A stretch of 64,000 nt of DNA, from positions 158,038,001-158,102,000 of the forward strand of contig NC_091469.1 of the NCBI RefSeq assembly GCF_036971445.1, written 5' to 3'. This DNA is from Narcine bancroftii (taxonomy: Eukaryota). Position 1 is the stretch's first letter; every line of letters begins with the position of its first letter. Shown one piece after another: positions 8,131 through 41,573 of the stretch. The notes under the pieces are model-generated. The model did not search any database and was not told the DNA's origin. It saw nothing but the letters and a program-made list of their open reading frames with translations. The translations under genes were made by a program, and so were the position numbers.

Positions 8131-8580
8131 CGAGAGTAAAAATGACCACGAACTATATGTATGTGTGTATATGGGTATATATATGTATATATATATATAT
8201 ATAATAAGGGAAAGAAAGGGAAGAGAGGAAGTAAGGAGGGAATTAAAAGAGTGACCTTTGTGACATATGAAAAGTGAAATCTTTTCTGGGGGAGGCGGGG
8301 TGGGGGGAAATAGCGGTCACTGCAAAATCAGTTGACGCTTGCGAGTGAATTCGCAAATCCAAATGGAGAGGGGAGTTGTGGTTGCCCGACAAGGGATAAA
8401 GGGCAACTCAGAAAGGGGAGGGGATAATGGGGTTAAAGAAATTTTAGATAGGAGAATAAGGGAAATGTTTGATGTTTTAGAAATGTTGTCTTATAAAGTG
8501 TTCAAAACAAGAAAGCAGAAATGGATAAGAAGGAAAGGTGATGATGAGGAAACGGAAAGGAAAGATAAACAAAGTATGAA

Positions 8581-11500
8581 ATGGCTACGTTGAACTATAT
8601 GACTTTAAATATTAACGGAATACATAACCAAATCAAAAGGAAGAAACTGCTAAATTTACTGAAAAAAGAAAAAATTGATATAGCATTTGTGCAAGAAACA
8701 CATTTAACTGAAATGGAGCACAAGAAATTAAAGAGAGATTGGATAGGACATGTAACAGCAGTGTCATATAATTCAAAAGCCAGAGGAGTAGCTATATTAA
8801 TCAGTAAAAATGTACCAATTAAAATAGAAGAGGAAATAATAGATCCAGCAGGGAGATATGTAATGATAAAATGTCAGATATATTCGGAGTTTTGGAATTT
8901 ACTCAATGTATATTCACCTAACGATTAAGATGAAAAATTTATGCAAGATATTTTTTTGAAGATAGCAGACACGCAAGGGAACTAATAGGAGGGGATTTCA
9001 ACCTTAATTTGGATTCAAACATGGATAAAACTGGGAAAAAAAATTAATAGAAAGAACAAAGTAACCAAATTTATAATTAAATCGATGCAAGAAATGCAAC
9101 TTTTGGATATATGGAGGAAACAACACCCAAAGGAAAAGGAATATTCGTATTATTCGGGTAGACATAAAACATACTCAAGAATAGACCTATTTTTGTTATC
9201 AGCTCGTATGCAAGATAGAGTAAGAAAAACAGAATATAAAGCTAGAATATTATCGGACCACTCACCCCTGATATTGACAATAGAGTTAGAGGACATCCCT
9301 CCAAGAATGTATAGATGGAGATTAAACTCCATGCTACTTAAAAGACAGGATTTTAGAGAATTCATTGAGAGACAAATTAAAATGTACTTTGAAATAAATA
9401 CGGAATCAGTGAAAGATAAGTTTATACTATGGGATGCAATGAAAGCGTTCATTAGAGGGCAAAAAATAAGTTATGTAACCAAGATGAAGAAGGACTACAA
9501 TCAGGAAACAGAGCAGTTGGAAAGGGAAATAGTAAATATAGAAAAAGAATTAGCAATGAAGGAAGATACAACTAAAAGAAGAGAATTGGCAGATAAAAAA
9601 ATAAAATATGAAACACTACAAACATATAAGGTGGAGAAGAACATAATGAAGACAAAACAGAAATATTATGAACTAGGTGAAAAAACGCACAAAATCCTAG
9701 CATGGCAGCTTAAGACACAACAAGCTAAGAAAATGGTATTGACATCAAGGAAAAAAGACAAACAAATTACATATAATCCAAAGGAGATTAATGAAAACTT
9801 TAGAGAATTCTATGAACAATTATACCAAACTGAAAACGAAGGGAAAGAAGACAAAATAGATGAATTTTTAACTAAAATTGAACTACCAAAATTACAAATA
9901 GAGGAACAAAATAAATTAACAGAACCATTTGAAATAGTAGAAATACAAGAGATAATAAAAAAAACTACCAAATAATAAGACACCAGGAGAGGATGGATTC
10001 CCAAAAGAATTCTATAAAACATTTAAAGATTTATTAATTCCTCCCCTCCTGGAAGTAATCAACCAGATTGATAAAACACAAAGCTTACCAGATTCATGCA
10101 AAACAGCAATAATTACAGTAATACCAAAGACAGGGAAAGATCCACTCGTACCAGTGTCATATAGACCAATATCATTACTTAACACAGATTATAAGATAAT
10201 ATCTAAACTATTAGCAAACAGATTAGCAGAGTATGTACCTAAAATAGTAAATCTAGACCAAATTGGATTTATTAAAAAAAGACGAACAACAGACAATATT
10301 TGTAAATTTATTAATTTAATTCATGCAGTAGAAGGGAATAAAGCTCCAACAGTAGCAGTTGCTTTAGACGCAGAGAAGGCCTTTGACAGAGTAGAATGGA
10401 ATTATTTATTCAAAGTATTACAAAAATTCAGTTTAACTTAAGCAGATCAACAAGGCAGTGATGCCCACTATCACCCTTATTGTTCGCGTTAGCTATGGAA
10501 CCACTAGCAGAATTGATAAGAACAGAAAATAAAATAAAAGGGATAAAAATAAAAGACAAGGAATACAAAATCAATTTATTTGCAGATGACGTTATAGTAT
10601 ACTTAACAGAAGCAGAATTATCAATAAAAGAATTACATAAGAAATTGAAGGAATATGGAGAAGTGTCGGGTTACAAGATTAACGCAAATAAAAGTGAAGC
10701 AATGCAAATGAATAATGCGGATTTCACAAAGTTTAAGAAAGAATCGCCATTTAGATGGCAAACACAAGCAATGTGATACCTAGGTATACAACTAAATAAA
10801 AACCTCGACCATCTATATAAACTCAATTACCATCCATTAATGAAAAAATTACAAGATGACTTAGAGCATTGGAAAGACTTACCACTAACACTGATAGGAA
10901 GGATAAACTGTATTAAAATGAATATTTTCCCAAGGATACAATACCTATTTCAGTCATTACCAATACACCTAACAGAGAAATTCTTCAAGGAGTTAAAGAA
11001 AATAATAAGGAAATTTTTATGGAAAGGGGGGAAACCGAGGATAGCACTAGATAAATTAACAGAATGGTATAAACAAGGAGGCTTACAACTGCCAAACTTT
11101 AAAAATTATTATAGAGCCGCACAATTAAGATACCTATCAGATTTTTATCAAACAAGGGAAAAGCCAGATTGGACTAGATTAGAACTAGATAAAATAGGGG
11201 AGAAGATACTCGAACATATATTATATAAATGGGATGAAAAATTGGTATAACGTAGGAATTCTTCAGTATTACATAATCCGCTCAATATTTGGAAGAAGAT
11301 TCATGTAGAAAGGAATAAAACAAATTACCAATTATCAAAACTAATACTGACGCAAAATCAGCTAATCCCTTTTACAATAGATAACCTTTCCTTTAGAGAA
11401 TGGGAGAAAAAAGGGATCAAAAGAATAGAAAATTGCTTTTCAGGAAATAAATTATTATCCTTTGAACAAATATAATATAACTCATGATACAGTGTTGGCA

Positions 11501-12276
11501 TACTACCAACTGAGATCCTACTTGAAGGACAAATTAGGAAGCAGTCTGAGGTTACCAGAGGGAAGTAATTTTGAATATGTGATTACAATCACAATGATAA
11601 TCAAAAGATTTATAACAAATATGTATATTAAACTACAAGAAAAGGAGAATGAGGAAACAAATGGTAAAACTAAACAAAAATGGGAACAAGATTTAAACAT
11701 AAAGATAAAGAAGGAAACATGGAAGAAGTTAGTTCTGGAACGATGAGAAATACAATAAATACGAGGTTACGTATGATACAATATAACTGGATACACAGGC
11801 TATACATTACACCTCAAAAGTTAAATAAATGGGACCCAACAGTATCTGACAGATGTTTTCGTTGTAAAAAAGAAATGGGAACAACAATTCATGCAATCTG
11901 GACGTGTGAGAAAGTAGAAAAATTTTGGGAAGATCTAAACCAAATATTAAATAAAATTACAGAAAACAATATACCAAAGAATCCAGAGATCTTCCTCCTA
12001 AGTAACATAAAAAACAAAGAATTTGGACTTGATTTGGATGGTGCACAAAAAAGATTTGTTAGGATAGCCCTACCTGTAGCAAAAAAATGTATTATGTCAG
12101 CCTGGAAATTAGAAGATAACTTGAGAATACAACAATGGTATGTAGAAATGAATAAATGTATTCCATTAGAAAAAATAACATATAATTTAAGAAATAATAT
12201 TGCAATATTTGAACAAATATGGGAGCCTTACGTGAAACACAATAGAGAAAATCTACCGGGGTCATCTATCACCTAA
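8581..12276 (+). pseudogene. L1 ORF2p (APE endonuclease, RT, C-terminal Cys/His motif), disrupted
   Basis: NINGI, VQETH, YSRIDLF, SDHSP; YRPISLLNTDYK, LDAEKAFD, LFADD; CFRC..EMGT..HAIWTC. Several stops and frameshifts plus an RT deletion near 10434. Confidence 0.93.
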
Positions 12277-13327: not shown

Positions 13328-16269
13328 TCAGTACCCCGTCCCCGCCTTCTCTCCGTAACCTTTAATACCCTTATACTGAAGAAATAGATCTAATTCCCTC
13401 TTAAATATATTTAATGAACCTGCCTCTACTGCCCTCTGTGGCAATGAATTCCACAGATTCACCACCCTCTGGGTCAAGAAATTCCTCCTCATCTCGGTCC
13501 TAAATGGTTTGCCTATTATCCTCAAACCATAGCCCTGGGTTCTGGATTTTCCCATCCTTGGAAACATCCCATCTGCATCCATTCTGTCCAGTCCTGCCAG
13601 AATTTTATACGTCTCTATGAGATCCCCTCTCAATCTTCTAAACTCCAGCGAATACAATCCCAATTTGCGCAATCTTTCCTCCTAAGTCATTCCTGCCATT
13701 CCAGGTATCAGCCTGGTGAATCGCCTCTGCACTCCCTCCATTGCAAGAACATCCTTCCTTATATAAGGTGACCAAAACTGCACACAATACTCCAGGTGGG
13801 GTCTCATCAAGGCCCTGTACAGCTGCAGTAAGGTATCCTTGTTCCTAGACTCAAACCCTCTTGATATGAAGGCCAACATACCATTTGCCTTTTTAACCGC
13901 CTGCTGTACCTGCATGCTCGCCTTCAGAGACTGGTGTACAAGTACCCCTAGGTCTCTCTGCACTTCCCCATCTCTTAATCTATTGCCATTCAAATAGTAA
14001 TCTGCCCTCCGGTTTGTATTATCAAAGTGGATAACCTCACATTTATCCACATTGTAGTGCATTTGCCATGTATATGCCCAGTCCCTCAATTTATCCAAAT
14101 CACACTGGAGCTTCCTAACCCCCTCTTCCGTGCACACAACCCCTCCTAGCTTAGTGTCGTCTGCAAATTTGGAGATATTCCATCCAATCCCCTCATCCAG
14201 ATCATTAATGTAAATTGTGAACAGCTGGGGTCCCAGTACAGATCCCTGTGGCACCCCACTGGTCACCGCCTGCCACTCAGAAAACAAGCCATTTATCCCA
14301 ACTCTCTGTCTTCTACCTGCCAGCCAGTTCTCAATCCACATCAATACTTTGCCCCCAATCCCATGAGCCTTCATTTTGTAAGCCAGTCGTTTATGCGGGA
14401 CCTTATCGAAGGCCTTTTGGAAGTCCAGGTACACCACATCCACTGGCTCTCCCCCATCTATTTTACCTGTCACCATCTCAAAGAATTCCAATAGATTTGT
14501 CAAGCACGATTTACCTTTTGTAAATCCATGTTGACTCCGTCCGATCCCTTCTCTGCTAGTCATGTGTTCCGATATTACATCCTTAATAATGGATTCCATC
14601 ATTTTGCCCACTACTGATGTAAGCCTCACCGGCCTATAATTCCCCACTTTTTCTCTAACCCCTTTTTAATAGTGGGGTAACATTAGCTACCCTCCAATCC
14701 ATGGGTACTGATCCTGAGTCTATCGAGTTCTGGAAAATAATTCTTAAAGCATCTGCTATCTGAATGGCCACTTCCTTGAGTACCCTAGGATGTAGATTAT
14801 CAGGCCCTTGGGATTTATCTGCCTTCAATCCCATCAATTTCCCCAAAACCATGTCCTTAGAGATACTGATTTCTTTCAGTTCCTCCCTTGCATTAGTCTC
14901 TATGTTTCCCAACATCGTTGGGAGGTTATTTGTATCCTCTCTTGTAAAAACTGAACTAAAGTAGGAATTTAATTGGTCTGCCATTTCCTTATTCCCCATT
15001 ATATATTCCCCTGATTCCGACTGCAAGGGACCTACTCTGGATTTCACCAATCTTTTCCTCTTGACATATTTATAAAAGCTTTTGCAGTCGGTTTTTATAT
15101 TTGCTGCGAGCTTACTTTCGTAATTTATTTTTGCTCTCTTGATTAATCCCTTTGACCTCCTTTGGTGCATCTTGAACTGTCCAGTCTTCGGTTGTGGTAC
15201 TTTTTTTGGCCAATTGATATACTCTCTCTTAGGACCTAATGCTGTCTCTAATTTCCCTTGTTATCCACGGTTGAGTCACCTTTTTTGGTTTATTTTTATG
15301 CCAAACCGGTAGAAACGATTTTTGCAATTTCTCCATTAGATCTGTGAATGCTTTCCATTGTCTATCCACAGTCAACTCCCCCATAAACACCACCCAATTA
15401 ATCTTACTCAACTCCCGTCTCATACCATCATAATTCCCTTTATTTAAATTCAGGACCTTAGTCTCGGGTTTAATTTCATCACTCTCCATGTCGAGTGAGA
15501 ATTCGATCATATTGTGATCGCTCCGACCCAAAGGGCCTCGCACAACAAGATTGTTGATTAGTCCCTTATCATTGCATAATACCCAGTCTAAAATGGCCTG
15601 CTCCCGAGTTGGTTCCTTGACATATTGGTCTAGATAACCGTCCCGTAAACATTCAAGGAATTCCTCCTCCTCAGTATTTTTACCAATTTGACTAGTCCAA
15701 TCTATATGCAAATTAAAGTCTCCCATGTTGACAGCTGTTCCCTTATTGCAAGCTTTTCTAATTTCTCTTTTAGTGCCTTCCCTCACCTCTACACTACTAT
15801 TTGGAGGCCTATATACCACCCCCACTAACGTTTTCCGCCCCTTGCTATTCCTCAGTTCTACCCATATAGATTCCGCATCTTCCGAGGTGATATCCTTTCT
15901 GTCAATCGTGTCGGTCCCTTCTCTCACCATCAATACTAACCCACCCCCTTTTCTTTCTTGCCGACCCCTCCTAAGTATCGTATACCCCGGGAAGTTAAGT
16001 TCCCAGGCTTGCCCACCCTGCAGCCATGTTTCTGTAATCCCAATCAAATCATATTTGTTTGTCTCAATTTCCACAGCTAATTCATCAACCTTGTTCCGAA
16101 TGCTTCTTGCATTAAGATATAAAGCCTTCAGATTTGCTTTTTTCACCCTCCTTGCTCTTTCTGATTTTTTACTTTCGCTGCCTAACCTAACTTTTCCTCT
16201 TTTATCTTTCCTGTCCTTTGCCCTATCATACAGGTTCCCACCCCCCTGCCAAATTAGTTTAAACCGCAC
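13328..16269 (-). pseudogene. CR1 ORF2 (APE endonuclease + RT), frameshifted into 4 ORFs
   Basis: YLNARS, GITETW, VYRPP, GDFN, SDH; NYRPV.LTS, YLDFQKAFD, GVPQGSVLGP, KFADD. Confidence 0.93.
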
Positions 16270-16958
16270 CCGATGGTTGTACCAAACCTACCTGCCAATA
16301 TATTGACCCCTTTTGGGTTTAGGTGTAACCCATCCTTCTTGTAGAGGTCATGCCTTCCCCAAAAGAGATCCCAATGATCCAATAAGCCAAAACCCTGTCC
16401 TTTACACCAGCCCCTCAGCCACACATTCATTTTTCTTAACCTTCCATTTTTGTCCTCAGCTGCACTTGGCACAGGTAGCAAACCAGAGATCACCACCCTG
16501 GCTGTCCTGTTTCTTAGTTTCTGTCCTAGCTCTCTGTAATCCTTTTTCAGTACTTCCTCCTCCTTTTTATCTATGTCATTGGTACCCACATGTACCAAGA
16601 CATCAGGCTGTTCACCTTCCCCTTTTAGAATACCCTGGACCCGATTTGAGATATCCCACACCCTTGCACCAGGGAGGCAGCACACCATGCGAGCACATCT
16701 ATCTGGCTCACAGAATCTCCTGTCTGTATTTCTGACAATGGAGTCCCCAATGACCACTGCATTCCTCTTTACCTTTTGGTCCACCATGCCAGGCTCAGTG
16801 CCAGCGACCTGGTCACTGCTGCCAGCTTCTGTCAGGTCATCTCCCTCAACAGCATCCAACAAAATATACCTGTCACTGAGAGGGATAGTCACAGGTGTGC
16901 TCTCCATTTTCCTGGTATTTTTCTTCCTTCCCCCGACAGTTACCCCCTTACCTGACAC
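16254..16958 (-). CDS. CR1 ORF1 SGNH/GDSL esterase-like domain (5' part missing)
   Basis: Block I VIGDS, block III VHVGTND and block V DGLHLN are all present in an open 234-aa frame. Confidence 0.85.
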   Translation of the reverse strand: MSGKGVTVGGRKKNTRKMESTPVTIPLSDRYILLDAVEGDDLTEAGSSDQVAGTEPGMVDQKVKRNAVVIGDSIVRNTDRRFCEPDRCARMVCCLPGARVWDISNRVQGILKGEGEQPDVLVHVGTNDIDKKEEEVLKKDYRELGQKLRNRTARVVISGLLPVPSAAEDKNGRLRKMNVWLRGWCKGQGFGLLDHWDLFWGRHDLYKKDGLHLNPKGVNILAGRFGTTIGCGLN

Positions 16959-17040
16959 ATCTGGTCTTGGGGTAACTATGTCCCTGGAAGTTGAATCTAT
17001 CAGCTCCTCACTCTCCCTTACCAGCCGTAGGTCCTCAAAA

Positions 17041-17712
17041 TTCTTGTAGGTTTGCAGAGAGAGATTTGTTGTTCCAGGATTTCCACATCTGAGGTACCAC
17101 CATTAGTCACCTCAAGGTCTCGCTGATGAAACTTGCCCCATCAGGGTTCTCCAGTTCTTTCAGGCTACCACAGAGTTCCTTTCTGTTCTGCTTATTCCAA
17201 GAGAAACATCAGACAGATTGCACTTCCAGCCATCTGCCACTCTGGAGCTTCTGTTTCAGTTCCAACAAGCTTCTCCTGGCTTGTTACCACTTTCTGTGTC
17301 TCATACACAAAGACTCCCTTCTGCATCTCTCTCTTACTGAGATTCAAACTGCCAGCCACATGTCCTTCTCTCTCTCACTTGCAAAACCCCCAACCTTTTC
17401 CGGCAAACAATAGGAGTTAGTCTTCTGCTCCCATCTGTTGTTTTAGGTAAACAAATGTATCAAGGAGTCAGCACTTTGCAGAGAGGTCAAAAGCCTTGCA
17501 AAAATGTCCATGGCTCTTCCAAGACAATAGCCTATTCATTTCATGACATCATTTCAATTAGCACTTACTTGTGAAATGTCCATAGTTTCTGTACAGTCAC
17601 TGAATATGAATTCTTCAGTATTTCAAATAAGATGTTTTAAAGTGTGTGTATGTATGTAACCTCTAATTTTACCAATTTATCTCTCAAAAACATTCCCAAA
17701 TATTCCATCACA
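17041..17712. mobile_element. LTR fragment, same family as 5453-6492, cut on the left by CR1
   Basis: Collinear similarity (TTGTTCCAGGA..TCCACA.CTGAGGTAC...AAACTTGCCCC.TCAGGGTTCTCCAG), ending TCACA. Confidence 0.75.
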
Positions 17713-17905: not shown

Positions 17906-18290
17906 GGTTTTCCACCGACGGCTGGACTATGTCTGGTGCTGATGAGGATATCAGCAGTTGAAGGAGCTTCTGTTGTGTTGCCATTTGCTTTTACCCACCC
18001 GCCCAAAGCGTGGACCCTCGCCGGTACCGTGATGTGGTACAGGAGCAAACCAGGAGCTGATCAACTTTTGTTTAACTGTACGTACCCCGACTTTGGTTGA
18101 TCCCGATGCGAACAAGCCACCCCAGAGACCGGAGGGGTTCAGTTCATATTCGTGGGGAACCTGAGCTGGAGAGATGCCTCAGTCATGGTAAATCATCTGC
18201 GCCGGGAGGATGAAGCTCAGTATTTGTGCAGCTTGAAGCTAAACATTGGTGTCTTTCCATCTGTGGTTGAAACGAAACTGATGGTAAGAG
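17906..18290 (+). pseudogene. Ig V-set exon 1 of a Siglec-15-like receptor (disabled)
   Basis: Acceptor ccccctgcag|, donor AGAG|gtgagg (phase 1). Reads GWTMS / VLMRISAVEGASVVLP(F)AFTHP..VMWY..LFNC..*SRC..FVGNLSWRDAS..LRREDEAQYLC..ETKLMVR. Lesions: inferred +1 frameshift near 17934, Phe at the B-strand Cys position, in-frame TGA at 18098-18100. Confidence 0.85.
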
Positions 18291-18866
18291 GTGAGGAACA
18301 ATGTTCAGAGTTGCAGCTGCCCAGAGCACGTGGACCACCTTCTCCACCACTCCCCGCCCGTCCAAAGCCTAGCCTAAGCGTTTTGGGGTAATGCACCCAG
18401 GTTCCTAACCCTGATCCCTCTCCAGTGAATGCCGCTGGACAGTTTTCTCCAGGAAGTGAATGAGATTCTGCTCCCAATTGTACTGACATCCCAGTCAATA
18501 GCCCACATCCCACTAAATTGGCCATGCAATGTCCCAGAATAGGAATGGGGGGAGGGGGGTTTAGCTTTTCACACCTGACCACTCCTAACTGGGACACTGA
18601 ATGCTTAAGACTTGCAAGGAGTCATCCCTAGAGTTGGGACTGCCCTACTTTCTACCAGTGACGTTATGACGCATCAAGCGACGGTGGATCTGCACTAAAC
18701 CCTGATCAATGTATCTTATATTTGAACAAAATAAATCATGTCTAATTACAACATCGTTAAGCTTTATGTACAGCCCAGTATGAGCCCATCAGCCCCTGTT
18801 GTTGATGTGCCGACCTATATAAACCTTTATAAAGGGACCGTGGGAAAGTGCTAACAATCAATAGTA

Positions 18867-19067
18867 ATAGTGGACCATATTTAAACAGCGTAGGAAAATT
18901 TGTAGCGCTATAGCACACAATTTACAAATACCATGGGAAAAAGCAGTGGCGGACCTGTCCTCCCAGAATTCACTGCTGTATGCCCAGCTGCATGCATGGA
19001 GCATTCATAGAGGGGTTTCTCTGCCATGCCACCAATTTTCCCACACTGTTTAAAAATTGTCCGCCAT
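18867..19067. mobile_element. MITE-like element with ~40-bp imperfect terminal inverted repeats
   Basis: Left ATAGTGGACCATATTTAAACAGCGTAGGAAAATT versus reverse-complemented right end ATGGCGGACAATTTTTAAACAGTGTGGGAAAATT; non-coding interior. Confidence 0.55.
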
Positions 19068-19558
19068 GAAGAGAGCCGCATTGAAGAAGTTCAGTGCTCG
19101 ACGTCTTAAAATTCGATAAATCTGACCACCCTGATCAAGTGAATCTTACATGCTCAAGGGAAAAAATTGCAGGAGACCCGTCAGAGACATTCACCGTGCT
19201 ATTGGGCAAGGGTAAGATGCCAGAGACTGGAGGGAGGTAAATGCTTAGTTTCAGAAATGCTGCAAGGACCAGCCAGAGAACGAGAGACAGTCGATCTTCG
19301 CATCAGTCATGAGTACCTTACTGGAGGCGCCTGTGAGATTCAGGATCTACTTGCATTTGAAAAGCTTGGTCAATAATTTCACAACAGTTTGATTGAGTTT
19401 CTTTTTCCCCTGAAGAGGTGACCAAGAACAGTACTGAGGACAGGGCGGTAAATATGAGGGGTTTACAAATTTGATTGTAACATGACTTTAACCTGACAAG
19501 TTGGGTGCTTTTCCACCCGTGTACAGGCCAATTAGTGGGTAGAATTTAAACAAAACTT

Positions 19559-19601
19559 CACAGGTCAACAATCCACCTCGGAGGTGGATTGTTGACCTGT
19601 G
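19559..19601. repeat. Perfect inverted repeat, 21-bp arms with a 1-nt spacer
   Basis: CACAGGTCAACAATCCACCTC-G-GAGGTGGATTGTTGACCTGTG. Confidence 0.95.
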
Positions 19602-19785
19602 TATGAACACCATTTAGCTGCTGCTGGGTCAATCTGCAAGCGATCGATGGCTACCTGACGTCAGCACCTGCGTGAAGTGGTCATTTTCCTTACCCATAAT
19701 ACGATACGATGCCTTTATTGTCATTTAAGACCAGACTGTAAACAGTGGTAAACCAAATAAAATTCCTCTATACTGTAATGCTACC

Positions 19786-20072
19786 TTTTCTTCTTTGGCT
19801 TGGCTTCGCGGACAAATATTTATGGAGGGGTAATGTCCACGTCAGCTGCAGGCTCGTTGGTGGCTGACAAGTCTGATGCGGGACAGGCAGACACGGTTGC
19901 AAGGGAAAATTGGTTGGTTGGGGTTGGGTGTTGGGTTTTTCCTCCTTTGTCTTTTGTCAGTGAGGTGGGCTCTGCGGTCTTCTTCAAAAGAGGTTGCTGC
20001 CCGCCAAACTGTGAGGCGCCAAGATGCACGGTTTGAGGCGATATCACCCCACTGGCGGTGGGCAATGTGGCA
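19786..20072 (-). mobile_element. RTE-clade LINE 3' fragment
   Basis: HRQW...SNRASWRLTVWRAATSFEEDRR...C.RVCLSRI.L.SHQRAC; same family as 59223-59830. Confidence 0.85.
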
Positions 20073-20589
20073 CATCACAAGATTATACAAAAACAACATA
20101 GACAACGCAAGACTACATCATTCCTACATCAGACAACACTATAAAAAATGACACAACACTGGAACACTCCTACCAGAGCGGTTCCAGCAGCATGAGGGAT
20201 TATGGGTAAGAAGGACAGTCATGGCTCCTGCCCCAGCTCCGTTCCCCGCTGGCCTTACAGTGTTTGCCGGCCAGACTGGCAATGTTTTTCTCCCCCCCAC
20301 CCCACCCCCCCAGCCTCGACCCCATTTTCCCAGTCCCAACAGTGCCCCTTCCCCTCCGCCCCTCCCCAATTCCACGCCCACCCTGGCCACTGACCTTTCG
20401 GAGGCAAGCACATCACTCACCGAGTCACCGAAGGAGCGGGAGTGCCCTTAAATAGCCCAGTTGACCAGGCAATTTAGGGTCCAGTGTGTAAGGGGCTGCA
20501 GGGACCCACTACACGGGTAGAATACACGGGTTTTGAGCAGCCCGTTTGTAAACGCCTATTGTCTACATGATATCTACATGAGGTGTTAA

Positions 20590-20955
20590 GATAATGAAAG
20601 GGATAGATAGAGTTGATATGGAAAGGCTTTTCCCATTGAGAGTAGGAGAGATGGATATAAGAGTTCATGGGTTGAGAGTTGACGGGCAAAGGTTTAGGAG
20701 TTACATGAGGGGGAACTTCTTTACTCAGAGAGGGGTTACTGTGTGGAATGGGCTTCCGGGAAAAGTGGTGGAGGCAGGGTCAATTTCGTCATTTAAGAAA
20801 GAGTTGGATAAGTATATGGATGGGAGGGGGATGGAGGAATATGGGCGGAGTGCTGGTAAATGGGATTGGAGGAGGGTACTTGGATCAGTGTGGACTAGAT
20901 GGGCCGTGATGGCCTGTTTCCATGCTGTAATTGTTATATGGTTATATGTTCTTTG
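20590..20955 (+). mobile_element. CR1 3' fragment
   Basis: MKGIDRVDMERLFP...FFTQRGVTVWNGLP...FKKELDKYM plus a CR1 tail. Confidence 0.85.
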
Positions 20956-22711
20956 AGGAAGCCGGCATGGACGGGTGGTCCTAAATATCAGAAGTACACT
21001 ATTGCAAATCAATGTTACTTTATTTACAACCTGGTAGAAGCTGATTCCAGCCTCTGCCGAATTAGACACCATCAACGTGCCAATCCTTACATTTTTGAAA
21101 GGTGAGATGATACGGGTGGACACCGTGTAGATCACAGGGAGAAGATGTATACCCTTTACAGGCAGCGCTGGATTTGAACAGGGGTCGCTGGTGCTGTAAT
21201 AGCAATGGGTTCACTGTGGTGCCCGATAGTTGGCATGAAAATTGATGAGAAGGTTATCTAAGATTTCAGTAGGATTGAGTTGAACAGGACAAATCGGCCA
21301 AGCAATAGCAGATGTAATCTCAGCAGTGAAAGATGTTGTACTTTGGTAGTCAACCCAAGGCAGGACATACTTGGAGAATGGTGTTCTGCTGAACAGAAGC
21401 TTGGGCGTTCATTGGCTTGTAATGAAGTATTCTACTATAAATGTCATTTGTGGAATCGCTGTACACGTTGTCGAGTTGATGTATACGAGGGGAAGTTGAT
21501 GTACCCGCTGTGGAGTCTAGACTGACACCTCCAGGGTTGCAAGCATCATGGCTTCTGTTACGTGGATAGAAAGTGATGTCATCAGTGATGCCATCAGCCC
21601 AGATAAAAACCTGTGTTGGATGCAGGTCAATTTCCCAAGTTTTCCACAGCACGTCCAGCATTTTGGGAGTCAGTTCACTTGCTGGTAAATGGGTCACCAC
21701 AGGCTTATTCTTCCATGATAACGAGGGTATGTTCAGATTGTCCGCCTTCAACAGTCAGGAACAACTCTGTGGCAACTTCACAAGACTGCACTTAAGAATA
21801 TTGCATCCCTATGCTGGCCACATGCGCCTGTACAAGATGTATAATTAACCTGGAATGTGTCGGCAGAAAAGGAAGCAGACAATGTTTCTCAGTCTGGTGG
21901 GGTTGATTATGAGGAGACGTGCAAAAAGGCAGGGGATTTCTCTGTGGATCTTTTAAGGTGGGGGACCTGAAATCATGAGGGGCCTGAATTTCATCAGTGG
22001 TCACAGTCGTTCTTACGGACTGATAGAATCTCCAACTAAAGGGCAGTGGCTTTAAGTGAGAATTTGAAATGGCAGCGAGGAGACAGTTCACACAGAGAGC
22101 CGTGGGATGATGGAACGACAATGTAAGAGACAGAAGGAGAGGCGGGGACAACTGTAATTCTGAAAATGCATTCAGACAGTCACATGGGCAGCAAGGGTTT
22201 CGTGAAATAATGGTCACGTCGAACTGGGTAGACAAAACGGTGGGACAAAAGGCATATTTATGTTCTGTAGAACATGATGATTCGCCGTGACCATAAATAA
22301 GAGAGGAGATCTCTGAGGAGAAGAGTGCCAGTCACCTGGGTAGGCGAACACATCACCACCCAAAGCCCCCACCCCGTTCAATACGCTGCGGCATACATTG
22401 AATAATCTCACTGGTGGACAGAGGCGGGATGTAGAGAGACACAGGTCATTGTCACCCCTCCCCCCTCTCCCATACTATGGGACAGGGTCAAGAGAGTGCC
22501 CCAATGTCAGAAATGCTCTGCCCTGTGCAGTGATCCTGGTTTGGGGACTATTGTTGAATCTATCCTGTGCACATCCTAACCCACCTTCCCGGGATCTTCC
22601 ATGTTATTTTCCCGAAGGGCAACGTCACTATCTAATGCACCGGGAGGAGACTGGATCTAGTCAATTCATTCATTAAATGCTGATCCATTTTGGTGTCTGT
22701 CCTTCCCTCAG

Positions 22712-23104
22712 CTCATGACCACAGGGCATCAATGGTGACTGGGGCAGAGGGAGCATCAGCCACCTTACCCTGTATCTTCTCACAGTCTCCATTTTACACC
22801 ATACACACGGTCACCTGGATGATGAAGGATCCCTACCGACACGTCGTTACATTCAGGCACCAATCTAATGGATCGTGGGCGGCAGAAAGCGGTGCAACTC
22901 GGTACGAGCTCGTTGGGGACCCCGAACAGGGAAATGCCTCAACCCGGATAAACCAGCTGAGTGTGCGAGACAGTCACGGCTACCTGTGCCTGGTGGAGTC
23001 CCAGAAACCAGATGATGTCCCTCATCCATTGGAAATGTATCCTTTTGTGCAGCCCCCATTTATCCATCTGTCCCAGAGAGAGGTTCAGCTGCAGCTCAAC
23101 CCCG
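22712..23104 (+). CDS. Ig V-set exon 2 of the Siglec-15-like receptor (open frame)
   Basis: Acceptor ccttccctcag|, donor CCCG|gtaaga, phase 1-1 and compatible with exon 1. VTGAEGASATLPCIF..VTW..RYELVGDPEQGNAS.RINQLSVRDSHGYLC.VE has the canonical B-Cys, C-Trp, D-x-x-x-Y-x-C pattern. Confidence 0.88.
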
Positions 23105-23239
23105 GTAAGAAACCATTGTCACATTCTCCAGGGTCAGGTGAGGGGCGGAGGGAGGGGAGCTGGTGCGGGATTCCCCATCTCTCAGCATGATCAGACCCCT
23201 CTCTGAGGGGTTAGGTGTCCATTCCGGAGACACCGAAGT

Positions 23240-24045
23240 TTGACCTCAGTTACCACATGGATTGCAACCACCCGCAATCTGGCAGAACAGCACCTCCTCC
23301 TCTGCTGGGCGGCCTCCAACCGGATGGCATTAACCTCAACTTCTCTGGCTTCTGATAACCCCCCCTCTCCCACTTCTTCTCTAGGAGCCTCCCCCCGTGG
23401 AGGAAAATCTGAAAACAAAGGGTTAAGGGTTCGCCCATAAGTTGCAAACTGCTTAAGTGGAGGCAGGGAACCTCAAGGTTGTGATTTATCTGCAGACACG
23501 ATAAGCTTTGGAATTCTGTGAAACAATGATTAAATTATTACCAAATGACATTGATAAACTATTGTCAGGTTGACCGCAACAGGAAGCTCACATGCAGGAA
23601 TGCACTGCCATTTATTGTATATAAACTCTGTTAAAACTGGCTGTGGTCAGAGCAAGCTCAGCTGGGTGCTGGGCCTGCTTTCCAAGATATGCTGCCAATT
23701 AAACTCTTCCGAAGCGTTACCCTGGCGTCAGTAGTTAATCCTTTCTCCGCCACACCCCCACGCCAGCTCTGTCTCTCTCCTTTTTCTCTCCTCCCTTTGC
23801 ACAAAGTCAATTCTCACCTCTCCATTTATCGTATCAAATAAACTCTTTGTGTTGGTCTGGATTCCTCCCCCAGCCGGCACCATCTCTATTCTGAGATTTC
23901 CTGATTTTTTTTTGCTTATACCTTGAAGAAAGGTTCAGTCCCAAATTGTTGGCAATGTATCATTATCTCCTATATGATGCTGCAAGACTGGCTGAGCTCC
24001 TCTGGTATTTCAGTGTGTTTGTTTAACTCTGCAGAGTTTTGTTTC
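23240..24045 (+). mobile_element. Penelope-like element 3' remnant, split by a solo LTR
   Basis: TRNLAEQHLL..GGLQPDGINLNFSGF* resembles the GIY-YIG C-terminus; downstream CTTGAAGAAAGG..CCCAAATTGTT..GCTGAGCTCCTCTGG resembles Penelope 3' repeats. Confidence 0.6.
23396..23754 (+). mobile_element. Small solo LTR
   Basis: (C/T)GTGGAGGAAA...TTTCTCCGCCACA termini, CCCC on both flanks, TATATAAA at ~23618 and ATTAAA at ~23698. Confidence 0.6.
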
Positions 24046-24074
24046 ACGTGGAGTACAGTATGGAGGGGTTGATG

Positions 24075-24240
24075 AAATGTTTAGAGTTAATTTATTCAGT
24101 GCACCTGATCCATCTAACTACACTATGTACCTTTGGATCGTGAGGAAAACCCGGGAAGGAATTGTGCAGGCCACGGGGAGAACGTGCAAACTCCTTGAAG
24201 ACAGCGGCCAACTCATAACAGCGCAGCGACAACCGTGTCA
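24075..24240 (-). mobile_element. Degraded V-SINE-like SINE
   Basis: CACGGGGAGAACGTGCAAACTCCTT..AGACAGCG, the reverse complement of the SINE core. Confidence 0.5.
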
Positions 24241-24391
24241 CCCTGTTCAACCAAGTTCCCAAGCGCCCCTTCAAGCCACCCATGCATCCATTTTAAGATG
24301 TTATGTCAGGTGTAAAACCAGAACATTTTGGATAAGTAGAGTGAAGCAAGATCAGTGAAGATGAATGAAAGGGCAGTTGCCTAGTTACTGG

Positions 24392-24910
24392 TGTTACAGA
24401 GTCCAGAGGACCCCAAAACCCAGCAGCAATAGATATGCACCACAAAAAGGGTTTCTTAAATAAAAGTTGCTTTTAATTATCTTTGAATGTGAAAATAGAA
24501 TCAAACTTTAACTTATTACTATCAACATACTTAACTTACTTAACCCCCCCCCCCCCCTAATTCTAAGCACAGGTGTGTGTAATGTGTATATAAGTGTAGA
24601 AAAGTTATTTGGTTCACAGTCCAATCTCACTGGTTGCAGGCAATTCTTGTACTGTGCACAGAAGTTAGTATTAATAAAGTTCACAAGGCTCTGGCAAACA
24701 GTTACCATTCAGGAGGGTTCTTGTTGGTTTTCAGAGAGAGATTCCTCTTCCAGGACATCCGCAACTGATTCCTTCTCAAACGAAACTTGCCCCCTTCAGG
24801 GTTCTCCAGATGATCCTCCTTCTTTCAGGTCACCTTTCAGAGAGCCAGCCTTCTCCTTTGACCAGACAGTCTTCCAAAAGTTTGCCAGCTTTGTCCTTCT
24901 GGAACTGATT

Positions 24911-24947
<37 letters not shown>

Positions 24948-25114
24948 GACTGCAAAGATCACATGGTCTCCCAGACAAGCTGTATGCTGATACTTTGTTG
25001 TTCTTTTGCAAAAAGCACTCTGCAATTATCCTGCAAAAATTCTGTGTTTTACAATGTGTGTGTGCAACCTGCTCTCACAATTCCTCCCAAACCACCTCTA
25101 AATACTCTGTCACA
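24392..25114. mobile_element. Solo LTR, shorter variant of the 5453-6492 family
   Basis: TGTTACAGAGTCCAGAGGACCCCAAAACCCAGCAGCAAT...ATACTCTGTCACA; no TSD visible. Confidence 0.8.
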
Positions 25115-25560
25115 ATTCATTCACAGGTTCCAGAACGGCAGGTTGATTGAGATTGAGATGTGAGAGAGTAGAGCAGACATCTCTGAAACACGTAGATTCC
25201 CAGAAGGCTTGAGAGGGACAATGCAGGGAGCATGCCTGGCAGGCTGATGAGTCCAGGAGCAAGGTCCTAGTTATATGTGTTGACCATGAAGCACTGAAAT
25301 AAGGAGGAATGACTGCTCTGAGGACAGTGAACCTTTGGAATTTTCCGAAGTCTGTGTGAGTTCATCCAAAACAGAAATATGAACCCACTTTACTGACCTG
25401 AACCCGGAATTACATTCCTCTCTCCAAAGAAGCCACCTGATTCACACAAGCAGTTACATTTGTTATTGTCCCACTGCTGACTGCTATTTTTGTCACAGAG
25501 TCTGCATTTACATTAAACAATCGCTGTCAATATTACTGGATGTATCGTTTGGCAACACCT

Positions 25561-25992
25561 CTGCGCTGGGTGGGTCACGTCTCCAGAATGGAGGACTATC
25601 GCCTTCCCAAGATCGTGTTCTCTGTCAAGCTCTCCACTGGCCACCAAGACAGAGGTGCACCAAAGAAGAGGTACAAGGACTGCCTAAAGAAATCTCTTGT
25701 TGCCTGCCACATTGACCACCACCAGTGGGATGATATCGCCTCCAATTGTGCATCTTGGCGCCTCACAGTTCAGCGGGCAGCAACCTCCTTTGAAGAAGAC
25801 TGCAGAGCCCACCTCACTGACAAAAGACAAAGGAGGAAAAACCCAACACCCAACCCCAACCCACCAATTTTCCCTTGCAACCGCTGCAACCGTGCCTGCC
25901 TGTCCTGCATCGGACTTGTCAGTCACCAACGAGCCTACAGCAGACACGGACACACCCCTTCATAAATCTTTGTCCACGAAGCCAAGCCAAAG
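25561..25992 (+). mobile_element. RTE-clade LINE 3' fragment
   Basis: LRWVGHVSRMEDYRLPK...GAPKKRYKDCLK...CNRCNRACLS.IGLVSHQR. Confidence 0.88.
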
Positions 25993-26017
25993 ATGGCACC
26001 AGTGATTGGTGTTGGGC

Positions 26018-26200
26018 TCCGAATCCCGCACGGTCTGTAGGGAGGTTGTATGCTCTCCCCCGTGTCTGCGTGGGTTTTCCCTGGGGGCTCCGGTTTCCTC
26101 CCGCCATTTGGAACGTACTGGGGATATAGGTTAATTGGGCGGCACGGACTCGTGGACTGAAATGGCCTGAACCATGCTGCATGTCCAAATTTAAATGTAA
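26018..26200 (+). mobile_element. V-SINE-like SINE (5'-truncated)
   Basis: CGAATCCCGC...CTCCCCCGTGTCTGCGTGGGTTTTCC..CTCCGGTTTCCTCCC and a CR1-like tail. Confidence 0.65.
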
Positions 26201-26486
26201 ATGAACCATTCAGTACCTGACCCAATGGTAGTGATATGGGACAGAATTACCCTTGCTTGTAAATGATCACAGAATTGACTCCATGCTGTCAAGGTTTTAT
26301 TTCCTAACCCTGGCTTCATTGTGTTGCTTGTAAACTCCCCTCACTTATTCCTTTACGCACGCTTTACCCTCCTCAGATCCTTCGGATAGTTCCAATGCCT
26401 CCACACCTACAGATTTTGTTCAGTTTGCATTATTGATCTCTTCCCTTCGCCCGAGGCTCATTTGGACCTCTCTCATTTTCTCTCAG

Positions 26487-26586
26487 CTGCAGAGCTTTTC
26501 GTCATCATGATCTTGTGTCTTCCACTTGGATTGAAAATTCTTGCTCTTCTAACAATGTGCATCGTTCTGTACACTAGCAAACTCGG
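26487..26586 (+). CDS. Transmembrane exon with a central Lys (DAP12-type) of the Ig receptor
   Basis: Acceptor ttttctctcag|, donor CTCGG|gtatgt. In phase 1 from exon 2 it reads AAELFVIMILCLPLGLKILALLTMCIVLYTSKLG; the Lys codon is 26534-26536. LGLK parallels the Siglec-15 TM motif LGFK. Confidence 0.8.
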
Positions 26587-27134
26587 GTATGTACGATTGC
26601 TGAAGACACTTGTCTTTTAGCGCTTGAAACTCAACCTGTGTATCGAGTGATCGAGTCATTGCATCCCACAGCGTGGAACAGAGTCACAGTCCCAGCTCAT
26701 CTGCACCAAGCAACATGACCTCCTTCTTTCTTCCCAGTTATTCCCATTAGGGTCATACCCCTCCACTGCTTTAATCCTTGGAAGGGTTTCTTTAATGAAG
26801 CTAACGCACCTGCCTTCACCACATTAGCAGCTCGTACCATATGCCCAACACCTTTTGAGTGATGATGTAGAGTCACGGAACAGACTTGATGGGCCTAGCG
26901 GCCTGTTCCTGTTCCTTTATCTTGTGATCTAACGTCCCTTCTAAATCCCACCTCCTCACCTTATATTTATACAAGATTCTCCTACTCAAGCAGGCTGATA
27001 TTATCCGTACCCCTCATGATTTTATAGATCTCAATAAAATCCCCTCTCAACCTCCTCTCCTCGATGGCAAACAGGCCTAGTTTTTCCAGTCTCTCATGCT
27101 AGCCCTAATTCTATTATAAAATTGGTAAGCATCT

Positions 27135-27467
27135 TGTGGTGATATGTTTACGCCAATGTATATTAGGTGGGGGGATCTAGTGGAGTTGTTTGAGTGAACC
27201 GGCGTGGACTTGAAGGGACGAGATGGCCTGTTTCCATGCCATAAACTGATATCTGGTTAGTTTTCATTGCCTGTTGTATATAGAGTTGGCCTGCCCACAG
27301 ATGACTGATATCCTATGACTGATATCCTGTGGTCCTGGGTCATAAAGATCGAGCCACCTCTCCCCTGTTGCCATTCCCATTCCTGGATCTGGGCCGGCAA
27401 AGTTCTTCTGCGTATTAAAGCCTATCGTTTCTGCAACCTAGTTTTTGTGGTTACTGGTGGTGCCTTA
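27135..27467 (+). mobile_element. Gypsy solo LTR carrying a short CR1-tail insert
   Basis: TGTGGTGATATG start as at 47775 and 62011; CATAAAG.TCGAG.C.CCTCTCC core shared with the LTR at 62011; ATTAAA. Confidence 0.6.
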
Positions 27468-27599
27468 TAGTCTTCTATTTCCTTTCCAAATTTTAACTGT
27501 CTCTCCTAAACTGCGCACAGTATTCTCAGGGTGGCCTCACCTTCGACACAGGTGCCCTGGACGATGCAGGCAAGCGTCCCAAGATTTCTCCTCAGAACC

Positions 27600-28420
27600 C
27601 AGTCCCTCTGAGCTGCCATCTTTAAAGAGCTATGTACTTGCATCACTGCGTCCCTCCGCTTCATCACACTCTTGAAGCCCCTCTCATTAACAGAAAAAAA
27701 TACTCTGGATCGGTTCGATTTACCCAAATGCAGCACCTCGTGTTTCTCTGAGTTGAATTGCATGTACAATTCCTGAACGCAGTTCCTCATCTGGTTTATC
27801 CCATTGTAAACCCAGATGACCTCTTCACTGTCCAATGTAGAGCAGTTCTCCCTGACATCGGCAAACTTGGACAGACATCCTTGTCCAAGTTAATTATCTA
27901 TATTAAACAAGAGCAAGGGTTATAATACTGAACCCTGAACCACCCCAATGGTCAGGGACCTCCCGTCTGAAAAACCTTCCTCTACATCAACTCTCTGACT
28001 CCTATCACTGAACTCATTGTGTTATCCAGTTGGCTTGTTGGCCTCCTACCTTGTGCATCCGAAGGTCCCAGAGCAACCAACATTGTGGGACCTTAACGAA
28101 CATTCCATTTATATAACATCAATGTCTTGAAATGCTTTGTCACCTTTTCAGATTTTTTAAATCAAAAATTACACTATTTACCTCCACAATTCCTTACTGG
28201 CTCTCCCAAATCTCACCGTCCTTTCAAATGTTTGTGGATTCGATCTCTCACAATCATCTCCCGTGTTTCCAGACCACTGAAGTCAGACCAACAGATTTGG
28301 TGTTAACCAAATTATCATTGCAGCCCATTTTTAAATAGGACACCATATTTGTATTCTCCAGTCCCTTGGAACTTCTATCCTCAGTGATGAGTTAAAAAAA
28401 TCTATCAGGGCCCCAACAAT
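27600..28420 (-). mobile_element. Very degraded CR1 RT fragment
   Basis: MQFNSEKHEVLHLGKSN in ORF 27506-27835; KFADV and GVVQGSVL remnants. Confidence 0.55.
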
Positions 28421-30215
28421 TGTCTTCCAAATTTCTGCTATTGCAAGAGCTAAGCTGTCGAAGGCCATCAGGGAAGCAAAGCGTGCTCATGCTAGCATAT
28501 AAATAGTCACTTCCTGGACCGCAAGGAGATGGGACTGGTGGAAGGGCATCACCAAACACAAGATCACACCATCTGCCTGTGCTAGCAATGCCTCCCTCAC
28601 AGATGGACTGAACGACTTCTATGTGCATTTTGAGGCAAAAGCGACATTGCACAAAGAAGATGATCTTTCCCCCAAACAATCAGGTGCTGGGTCTGACAGG
28701 AGGAATAAGCTAAGCAAAGTTAACCCGTGGAAAGCTGCTGGGCGCAGATAACATCCCTGGCAGAGTGCTCAGGGGATGTGTGGCTCAGCTAACAGATATT
28801 CTCACTGGCATCTTTAACATCTCCCTGAGAAACGCCTTACCTCAAAGCTGCCACTATCGTCCCTGTGCTGAAGAAATTGTCTGTGTCCTGCCTCAGTGAT
28901 TACCGCCCTGTCGCACTCACGTCGATTGTCATGAAGAGCTTTGAGAAGCTCGTCATGGGGCACATCAAGCTCCTGCTGCCCCTGGCACTAGACCCCTTGC
29001 AGTTTGCATACGGATCCAACCGCTCCACGGATGATGCCATCACCACTGGCCTCTATCTAGCCCTCACCCACCTGAAAAATAATGATTCGTATGTTCGGAT
29101 GCTGTTTATTGACTACAGTTTAGCATTCAACATGATCATACCCCAGTCCCTGATAAGGAAGTTGGGTCTGCTGGGTCTAATCACCTCCCTCTGCAATTGG
29201 ATTCTTGACTTTTTGTTGGGGAGATCTCAGGCAGTCCGGATCGGAAGGAGCATCTCCAAGACCATCACACTGAGCATGAGGGAGCCCCCCCCCCCCCAGG
29301 GATGCGTCCTTAGCCCACTTCTGTTCACTCTGCTGACCCGTGACTGTGCAGCCAAACACAGCTCCAACCACATCATTAAGTTCGCTGACGATACGACCGT
29401 GGTGGGCCTGAGGAGTCAGCCTACAGAGATGAGGTGCAGTCGCTCACTGACTGGTGCAGAGTCAACAACCTGCATCTGAACATTAATAAAACAAAAGAGA
29501 CGGTTGTTGACTTCAGGAGACCCCGGGGGGTCCACACTCTGTTGACCATTGACGGCTCAACCATTGAGGCCATCAAGGGAATAAGGTCCCTTGGAGTACA
29601 CTTGGCGGAGAATCTCACCTGGTCCCTTAACACCAGCTCCACAGCCCAGAAATCCCAGCAGCGCCTCTACTTCCTGCGAAGGCTGAGGAAAGTCCATCTC
29701 CCACCCTCACTATGTTCTACAGAGGATGTATCGAGAACATCCTGTGCAACTGCATCACTGCCTGGTTTGGAAGCTGTACCACCTTAGTCCGCGAGACCCT
29801 GCAGAGGACAGTGAAGTCAGTGCAAAAGATCATGGGGGGGGGGGCTCTCTTCCTACCATGAAGGACACCTACAACACTCGATGCAGGCAAAAGGCAATAA
29901 ACATTGTGAAGGATTCCACACGCCCCTCAATTAAACTGTTCTCCCTTCTGCCATCTGGTAGGAGGTACCGTGGCACTCGGGCCCTTACATCCAGACTGGG
30001 CAATAGCTTTTACCCCCAAACCATCAGACTCCTGAATTCCCAGGACATATGTGTATAGAGTCCCCTGGTACTGGGGACTCTTATGATATACGTCTTAATA
30101 TTTAATGTTTTATGTGTTTAACTTCTATCTTATATTTATGCAAATATGCTCCATGGTCCTCTTCTTTACCATGTTAGCATGGTATGAAGGATAAATAAAG
30201 GGGACTCGACCTGAC
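28420..30215 (+). mobile_element. Rex1/Babar-clade LINE, 5'-truncated and disrupted
   Basis: [91 protein letters not shown]; AATAAA tail. Confidence 0.92.
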
Positions 30216-30843
30216 TCCCCTGGCTCCTGCTGACCCATTGGGGGTCCGATGGTAACACCCATCAAACGCTCCCTTCTCTTTCATCGCGTAGCAGCCAGCA
30301 TGTCAGCGTCTTAAACTTTCAAACGAGATTGAACTGGACTCCATCGGTATGGTATTTATTTATAATCAGGTTTAACGTACATATTCCAATCTCAGCCTCC
30401 TCCTGGTCTGCCATAGATGGCACTTCCTTAGCACCGTGGGTTGGTAAACCAAGCTCCCTCTGTACACCCGGGAAGCCAGCATCCTTTGCACAGGTCCCAC
30501 TCTCGACGCCAAACAAAATGCATCTCAACTTCTAGCATAAGGATTAACCTAACATTACTCATTCCATTTTACCACCTGATCGACATCATCCTGTGGCAAG
30601 TCGCCACTCCTCAGTGTCAACATCCCCACCAATCTTCACTCCATCGCCGAAGTTTCTAATTTTATGTGGCTATGGGTCCACGCTTATTGTCAGACAAGAT
30701 CATCTGCCCTCTGGAGAGTTCTACTGCATACTCCAATCGAATCCCTTCCAAAATTATCCATTGGGTATTAGTTGGGTGGCCAGAAGTGGGTTTGTTGCCC
30801 AATTTCCTATGTTCACTTTTGGTTGATCTTGTTTTGCCCACAG

Positions 30844-30877
30844 AAATGAGCGAGATGGATCCATCGCAAGAGATTGA
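30844..30877 (+). CDS. Candidate terminal (cytoplasmic) exon of the Ig receptor
   Basis: Strong acceptor ttgatcttgttttgcccacag| in non-repeat sequence; joining to the phase-2 TM donor gives GNERDGSIARD*. No homology support. Confidence 0.35.
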
Positions 30878-41409: not shown

Positions 41410-41573
41410 ACTAACAGGTAAGTAAAATTCCTCTTACCGGGATCCAGTAGCTATTCCTAGCATGCTTCCTTAACATCCTCCCGTCGTTTGTTCTCAATGC
41501 CTCTTCTCGGATATCATTCGCTTCATCCACTGACAAGTCACCTGCCTTTGTCCTTATTCACGCCTTCCCAACC

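Follow-up and report, generated by a model that had tools for sequence, protein, structure and literature searches.

A probably disabled copy of an elasmobranch family of Siglec-15-like paired receptors in Narcine bancroftii

Siglec-15 and a receptor family of sharks and rays

The V domain of Siglec-15 is characterized by the C64-C142 disulfide, a 'unique' C95-C104 bridge, R143 and W44, and is followed by a C2-set domain and by a charged transmembrane (TM) segment through which the receptor is coupled to DAP12 or DAP10 (PMC10264397). The present analysis concerns a locus of Narcine bancroftii that lies in a window of 64,000 nucleotides (the whole stretch of DNA analysed, positions 158,038,001 to 158,102,000 of contig NC_091469.1, assembly GCF_036971445.1; coordinates below are counted from its first letter). 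The locus holds four exons, for a Siglec-15-like V-set domain (V1), a second V-set domain (V2), a TM segment whose central residue is a Lys, and a short tail. It is probably a recently disabled copy, pseudogene or null allele, of a gene of activating type within a family of paired immunoglobulin-like receptors that extends across the elasmobranchs.

The relationship to Siglec-15 is most clearly seen at the level of this family. When its profile (A1) is compared with the Protein Data Bank, human Siglec-15 (7zoz) comes first (E 2.5e-21, profile positions 21-150), with an alignment that covers W-S-M, AVLPCTFTHP, both Cys residues of the extra loop, RFRxxGN, VERL, and YxCRVE; the next-best non-Siglec matches for the V1 region have E 1e-9 or weaker. 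Human Siglec-15 is also the first phmmer match of P0008, a single member of the family (E 3.7e-12). Siglec-15 (Q6ZMC9; 7zoz) and the V1 domains of the family thus share W-S/T-M/I, AVLPCTFTHP, F-x-C...C, RFRxxGN, DxS..VERL, and Y-x-C-R-V-E, and the Siglec-15-like V1 signature with its extra Cys pair, reported in a preliminary description of this DNA, is borne out. Both also have a short tail and a TM segment whose central Lys is set in the pattern LG-x-K-x-L-x-LL; HMMER aligns the family TM with LGALGFKALLLL of the 7zoz chain, Lys on Lys, this stretch alone being not significant. As judged from these alignments, the family is Siglec-15-derived in V1, and its TM probably has the same origin. It is nevertheless not Siglec-15 itself, whose second domain is C2-set instead of V-set and which is a single conserved gene, whereas the family is an expanded multigene group with inhibitory partners. 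The presence of many copies per species argues against a simple orthology with SIGLEC15.

At least 118 clusters at 90% identity can be assigned to the family, from both sharks and rays, and RefSeq predicts members in more than 20 species. Rays and skates are represented by Narcine, Hemitrygon, Hypanus, Mobula, Pristis, Leucoraja, Amblyraja, and Rhinoraja, and sharks by Heptranchias, Heterodontus, Chiloscyllium, Hemiscyllium, Stegostoma, Rhincodon, Scyliorhinus, Mustelus, Cetorhinus, and Pristiophorus. The receptor had been called hidden, a term that does not suit a family whose proteins RefSeq already predicts, some of them under the name 'Siglec-15'. The automatic names are in conflict with each other (uncharacterized, Siglec-15, Siglec-10, Siglec-12, sialoadhesin-like, CD33-like, pIgR-like, JAML-like, HAVCR1-like), and what is gained here is a consistent description and not a set of unseen genes. 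No description of the family was found in the literature on elasmobranch Siglecs, cartilaginous-fish DAP12, and multigene families with V-set domains and immunoreceptor tyrosine-based inhibitory motifs (ITIMs), a search whose coverage left out most subscription journals. Among the matches listed for the family profile there is no holocephalan, teleost or tetrapod protein. The sole good-scoring match outside the elasmobranchs in that list is P0260 (258 aa) from Latimeria chalumnae (E 1.8e-18, 30% identity).

Intact members are type I membrane proteins built of a leader, V1, V2, a stalk, a TM segment, and a tail, so that the preliminary description was right in proposing a lineage-specific, Siglec-15-derived family with two V domains, no C2 domain, a Lys in the TM, and a short tail. 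Its view of the family as activating is correct for part of the members only, the ITIM-tailed inhibitory partners having been overlooked. Among 123 sampled proteins, 32 combine a Lys-TM with a short tail (6-12 residues), and 31 have an uncharged TM and a long tail with VIYAAV, VTYAAV or ILYAEI, that is, with motifs of the V/IxYAxV type. In a tree of V2 domains the sequences cluster by taxon, with Lys-TM and ITIM-like types interspersed. By analogy with mammalian receptors, V1 of the intact members would bind sialylated ligands where the Arg is kept, the Lys-TM forms would pair with a DAP12-type adaptor carrying an ITAM (immunoreceptor tyrosine-based activation motif) for signalling, and the long-tail forms would inhibit through their ITIMs and the recruitment of phosphatases. 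V2 occupies the place of the C2 domain of Siglec-15.

Departures from the full architecture are also found in the databases. V2-only family proteins exist (P0001, P0198), and 15 RefSeq models from Pristis, Hemitrygon, Hypanus, and Rhinoraja start at a conserved internal Met of V1 (MVERL...); they include P0006, P0013, P0152, P0157-P0162, P0189, P0242, P0243, and P0246. A Lys-TM is present in 10 of these 15 models vs 22 of the 108 others (Fisher p 5e-4). These models reflect either truncated annotation or a V1 disabled in many activating ray copies. A second contrast concerns the Arg, which is lost in 8/19 Lys-TM proteins vs 1/21 ITIM-type proteins. In both comparisons isoforms were kept and the rows are related to each other, and both are to be read as leads, not as statistics.

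Several other known systems resemble the family in part. In mammalian paired Siglecs the ectodomains are near-identical, the essential Arg is lost in some members, and disabled activating members occur. The CD33-related Siglecs (Siglec-5/14, Siglec-11/16, SIGLEC16P) share with the elasmobranch family the logic of paired activating and inhibitory forms, an essential Arg that is often lost, and the existence of disabled activating copies. They have, however, a V-C2n architecture, whereas the family is V-V with a V1 nearest to Siglec-15 and not to CD33. The AlphaFold model of P0008 (predicted local distance difference test, pLDDT, 82) presents two beta-sandwich domains and a TM helix, and Foldseek matches it best to proteins with a V-V tandem: JAML, single-chain Fv fragments, and pIgR. 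JAML (AMICA1), matched at E 3.8e-15, is likewise a membrane protein of type I that carries two tandem V-set domains, but it has only 14-15% identity to the family, no Siglec-type motif, and a different signalling, so that the likeness is confined to the V-V architecture. Finally, MDIRs are paired receptors of skate built of V domains, and MDIRs and NITRs resemble the family as lineage-specific multigene V-domain receptors of fishes with activating forms (charged TM) and inhibitory forms (ITIM) (PMC3031540). The MDIR V domains are described as CD300/TREM/pIgR-like, and the searches for the family brought up no protein with an MDIR or NITR name.

The Narcine locus and its lesions

Within the window, family proteins map to a single place, the four-exon locus, with tblastn E values of 6e-41 for V1, 3e-56 for V2, and 4e-7 for the TM exon. 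The features of the locus are as follows.

17543-17603, + strand: possible decayed leader exon, low confidence, reading MTSFQLALTCEMSIVSVQSL, about 300 nt upstream of V1
17906-18290, + strand: V1 exon, Siglec-15-like V-set, disabled; acceptor ...ccctgcag, donor gtgagg, ends in phase 1
17944-17948, + strand: V1 frameshift site, one extra base at about 17946-17947
18098-18100, + strand: in-frame TGA in V1, inside the loop that the two Cys of the extra disulfide enclose
22712-23104, + strand: V2 exon, second V-set and stalk, intact; acceptor ...ccctcag, donor gtaaga
26487-26586, + strand: TM exon with central Lys, AELFVIMILCLPLGLKILALLTMCIVLYTSKL; acceptor ...ttctctcag, donor gtatgt
30844-30877, + strand: tail exon, (G)NERDGSIARD followed by a TGA stop; phase 2, acceptor ...ttgcccacag

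The homologous V1, V2, TM, and tail exons thus stand in family order on one strand. V2 (393 nt) runs from phase 1 to phase 1 and the TM exon (100 nt) from phase 1 to phase 2, and the tail exon is preceded by a strong polypyrimidine tract and AG. Three exons with canonical splice sites and compatible phases had been proposed together with a candidate tail exon, and the coordinates, AG/GT borders, and phases of all four are confirmed. The V1/V2 junction reads ...MVR-A-HDHRASMVTGAEG, and the equivalent in the closest paralogue, P0180, is ...FVRAPDHRVSVVTGAEG. Searches were made exon by exon; a conceptual spliced product, with X at both V1 breaks, was aligned to A1 for the count of conserved columns only. 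The window has no N runs. No protein identical to its exons is found in a collection of 5.8 billion proteins, which fits an unannotated locus or a pseudogene.

V1 is a recognizable member of the family, with 60-65% identity to Narcine paralogues (tblastn E 6e-41 to 8e-40) and, as its nearest relative, the ITIM-type Narcine gene P0003 (65% identity). It keeps 11/12 invariant and 9/12 near-invariant family columns. It also has both Cys of the extra disulfide, which are present in 75/76 and 73/76 family V1 domains. Pfam V-set matches the C-terminal piece of V1 only, and a cluster-level protein search with V1 returns generic V-set clusters only. With 385 nt, the exon is not the multiple of 3 that two phase-1 borders require, because one base has been inserted at about 17946-17947. 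In the tblastn alignment, frame 1 accommodates residues 21-33 of P0003 and ends at 17943, and frame 2 takes over from 17948 with residues 35-154. The first 13 codons (FSTDGWTMSGADE) are therefore not in the same frame as the remainder: behind the acceptor, the correct frame reads xFSTDGWTMSGADE (family GWTMSGAD) and then meets a stop, and the rest of the domain (ISAVEGASVVLPFAFTHP...) is encoded in another frame. Read with X across the frameshift, the segment becomes GWTMSGADE-X-ISAVEG, the P0003 counterpart being GWTMSGADVVSAVEG.

The second lesion is the TGA at 18098-18100, in a column that holds H, R, P, S or Y in the 76 family V1 domains. Read-through of this codon as selenocysteine was considered and rejected, the relatives having ordinary residues there and the frameshift persisting regardless. 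With these two lesions V1 is not the open exon that had been proposed. Compared with Siglec-15, the window copy also has Ser instead of the Arg and Phe instead of the B-strand Cys. The essential Arg (R143 equivalent) is thus absent from V1, the residue after the F-strand Cys being Ser (YLCSLKL); the family has R here in 52/76 domains, and S, G or Q in P0008, P0007, P0164, P0180, and P0165. The B-strand column is C in 69, F in 3, W in 3, and Y in 1 of the 76 domains, and the Cys-to-Phe change is shared with P0003.

The three downstream exons (V2, TM, and tail) are all open. V2 is a V-set domain by Pfam (PF07686, E 9.5e-12; 1e-18 to 1e-24 for relatives), has the two canonical Cys only, and retains 20/20 invariant family columns. 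The preliminary description had suggested a search of other species with the exons; among 1.84 billion representatives, V2 matches 132 relatives at E<=1e-3, and for 15 of these E falls below 1e-30 (best phmmer E 3.7e-85). The match mostly lies at residues ~150-280 of the relatives, behind another domain. In the V2 tree the window sequence falls within a Narcine clade beside P0180, with 81% identity and a short terminal branch. The TM exon matches family TM segments over 31 aa (58%, tblastn E 4e-7), the family consensus being strongly conserved (CIPLGLKTLALLVM). Its Lys lies within LPLGLKILALL, so that the feature by which Siglec-15 is judged able to pair with an adaptor is present in the window, and a copy with this TM would be predicted to do so.

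The tail, NERDGSIARD*, resembles the family tails SKREDGSIAGS*, RKRQDCSTAGD*, and RRKEEDRSITGS*. The family tail motif [DE][GCRS]S[IT][AT]x1-3* (ending in a stop) has a single match in the six frames of the window, precisely at the predicted tail exon; scanning the window by plain identity to family tails gave no information, these tails being G-rich. A tail exon in phase 1 was also considered and rejected: a KRKxD-type search found none, and the TM exon ends in phase 2. Since V1 is nearest to the ITIM-type P0003 and V2 to P0180, the window copy is a mosaic, which suggests exon shuffling or gene conversion among members of the cluster.

No functional leader with a donor site was found by tblastn and position-specific scoring matrix (PSSM) searches within 17.9 kb, in agreement with the preliminary description, in which no leader exon had been found either. 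The weak candidate at 17543-17603 ranks 5th of 2,263 Met-started 20-mers from the six frames with a family leader PSSM and has a tblastn E of 0.83. It can be matched ungapped to the family leader MRSLRVCLCTVLLSVSVQGY at M1, S3, L8, and V15-S16-V17-Q18, and its place is the one expected of a leader, but its hydrophobic core includes a Glu, and AT stands instead of a GT donor at the expected phase-1 position.

Transcript evidence was sought in Logan contigs from four sequencing runs of one study, whose nature as RNA is a guess: bins of unique intron sequence have zero depth and V2, the TM exon, and repeats are covered, an RNA-like pattern. Contigs on V2 begin at the acceptor (22710), upstream of which their records continue for another 382-406 letters, and between 22710 and 22976 they are ~92% identical to the window. 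Those of two runs then pass from 22976 straight to 26508, a position within the TM exon. When the contig differences are applied to the window, the peptide equals N. bancroftii P0180 at 86/87 residues, and contig and window V2-TM differ by ~9 synonymous and ~10 non-synonymous changes. The contigs hence come from an expressed Narcine bancroftii paralogue in which V2 is joined to TM, and not from the window locus; no contig at least 99% identical to the window exons was present in the four runs. The V2-TM splicing anticipated in the preliminary description is therefore seen in a paralogue and not at this locus. The first 267 nt of window V2 are ~92% identical to the expressed activating gene of P0180 type, and its last 128 nt (the stalk) are >10% diverged from that type and resemble the stalk of P0003 type.

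Readings of the locus and of the family

As it stands in the assembly, the locus cannot give rise to a V1-V2-TM(Lys) protein, because V1 carries an inserted base as well as a nonsense codon, and the leader is either missing or decayed. With the frameshift, the TGA, and no leader with donor, the locus has no open frame from leader to tail, and the working receptor that had been proposed here is not supported, in view of these lesions and the lack of a matching contig. Since the conserved columns are nearly all kept (V1 11/12, V2 20/20), the pseudogene or null allele would be a young one; the short terminal branch of V2 is a further sign of recent decay. The disabled copy is the reading that we consider probable, and a number of observations weigh against it. 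The V2, TM, and tail exons (527 nt) are without any lesion, an outcome with a chance of ~0.07 under equal decay given two lesions in the 385 nt of V1, and some constraint may act on V2-TM. The Cys-to-Phe and Arg-to-Ser changes are no evidence of decay because intact annotated paralogues have them (P0003 the former, P0008 and P0007 the latter). The extra V1 base falls within a short stretch of G and might stem from an error of assembly. Finally, the RNA nature of the four runs is a guess, and their source tissues may be silent for the window gene.

Two other readings would leave the locus functional. If V1 were skipped and the leader spliced to V2, a single-V activating receptor of the form leader-V2-TM(Lys)-tail would result, with phase-1 junctions throughout. 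Such skipping would be frame-neutral, V1 and V2 both being phase-1 symmetric, and would yield a product in which V2, TM, and tail are open and every invariant family residue is kept. V2-only proteins such as P0001 and P0198 are known, and the enrichment of internal-Met models in Lys-TM members hints at a recurrent loss of V1 with V2-TM kept, unless these models are annotation artefacts. The scenario lacks a usable leader, the 17543 candidate having a charged core and no donor, and a locus-specific transcript was not seen in the four RNA-like runs; we regard it as unlikely and infer a loss of function at the locus, not a rescue through the skipping of V1. In the other reading an intact V1-V2-TM(Lys) receptor exists, as proposed in the preliminary description, the V1 lesions being assembly errors or confined to a single haplotype and the leader lying outside the recognised sequence. 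The conserved columns of V1 (11/12 invariant, 9/12 near-invariant) and the canonical splice sites of all four exons would be expected of such a gene. Polymorphic null alleles are moreover common in mammalian activating paired receptors (SIGLEC16P, SIGLEC14-null). This explanation has nevertheless to account for two independent lesions in one exon, an indel and a substitution, and an erroneous substitution that creates a TGA is improbable in a modern assembly. It also has to accommodate a retrotransposon of ~3.4 kb directly upstream (13685-17102) and the lack of a leader with donor within 17.9 kb, and we regard it as unlikely too.

A last alternative concerns not the state of the locus but the identity of the family, which might be unrelated to Siglecs and belong to a described group: MDIR, CD300/TREM/pIgR-like or NITR. 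V2 alone indeed matches CD276, TIM-2, and pIgR about equally well as Siglec-15, and NCBI has given some members pIgR-like, JAML-like or HAVCR1-like names. CD300 and pIgR domains typically carry an extra Cys pair, and V2 has none. The V1 profile matches Siglec-15 first and alone (E 2.5e-21), with the second disulfide and the Arg aligned, and no protein named MDIR, NITR or CD300 occurs among the at least 118 family clusters or the 132 representatives. Even with the precedent of the MDIRs, which are paired V-domain receptors of skate (PMC3031540), membership in one of these groups is thus highly improbable.

If the disabled copy is taken together with the composition of the family, a broader and more speculative proposal can be made. 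To our knowledge, fishes have only the conserved Siglecs 1, 2, 4, and 15, and expanded, fast-evolving paired Siglecs are mammalian or tetrapod. Sharks and rays might have independently built a counterpart of the CD33-related Siglecs from a Siglec-15-type V domain and TM, that is, a set of paired sialic-acid receptors with fast turnover. Its activating partners would preferentially lose the Arg and even V1 but retain V2-TM(Lys), the window would hold a copy caught in the middle of this loss, and V1-less copies might work with V2 only. We offer this as a tentative idea, more doubtful than not. Were it true, it would represent a second independent case of expanded paired-Siglec logic, 400 million years removed and with the C2 domain replaced by a V domain. 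The family would in addition be testable material on the decay of activating decoy-type receptors. Taken alone, the locus is unremarkable, one broken copy within a region rich in transposable elements.

Retroelements around the locus

Most of the window consists of retroelements, and only sequence of transposable elements flanks the receptor gene. Besides the receptor exons, the following elements were recognized from their open reading frames (ORFs) and domains, including those of reverse transcriptase (RT), in long interspersed nuclear elements (LINEs) and in long terminal repeat (LTR) elements that resemble endogenous retroviruses (ERVs).

7498-12273, + strand: copy 1 of a LINE family, ORF e.g. 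TKYEMATLNYMTLNINGIHNQIKRKKLLNLLKKEKIDIAFVQETHLTE
13685-17102, - strand: non-LTR retrotransposon with Exo_endo_phos endonuclease and RT domains, immediately upstream of the V1/leader region
28395-30055, + strand: RT fragment in the intron between TM and tail exons, outside the gene product (Pfam RVT_1 E 4e-17, from the ORF list)
40000-47700, + and - strands; 53940-57350, - strand; 62780-64000, - strand: LTR-retroelement or ERV-like pieces with Gag_p30-like, aspartyl protease, RT, RNase H, and integrase domains
48305-53895, - strand: copy 2 of the LINE family, ORF e.g. TEYEMAMLNYKTININGIHNQIKRKRLLNLLKKEKIDIAFVQEPHLTE; RVT_1 E 1.7e-38

The retrotransposon at 13685-17102 may have cut off the promoter or leader from the rest of the gene. 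The two LINE copies flank the receptor locus in opposite orientation, with near-identical ORFs. Another repeat, at 24400-26200, 19780-20150, and 59160-60000, is present in at least 3 copies in the window with common ORF pieces (e.g. ...ASWRLTVWRAATSFEEDRRAHLTDKRQRRK...). Its summed depth in the RNA-like contigs reaches ~1e6 at 25600-26000, and the repeat is therefore one of a family of elements that are very abundant and probably transcribed.

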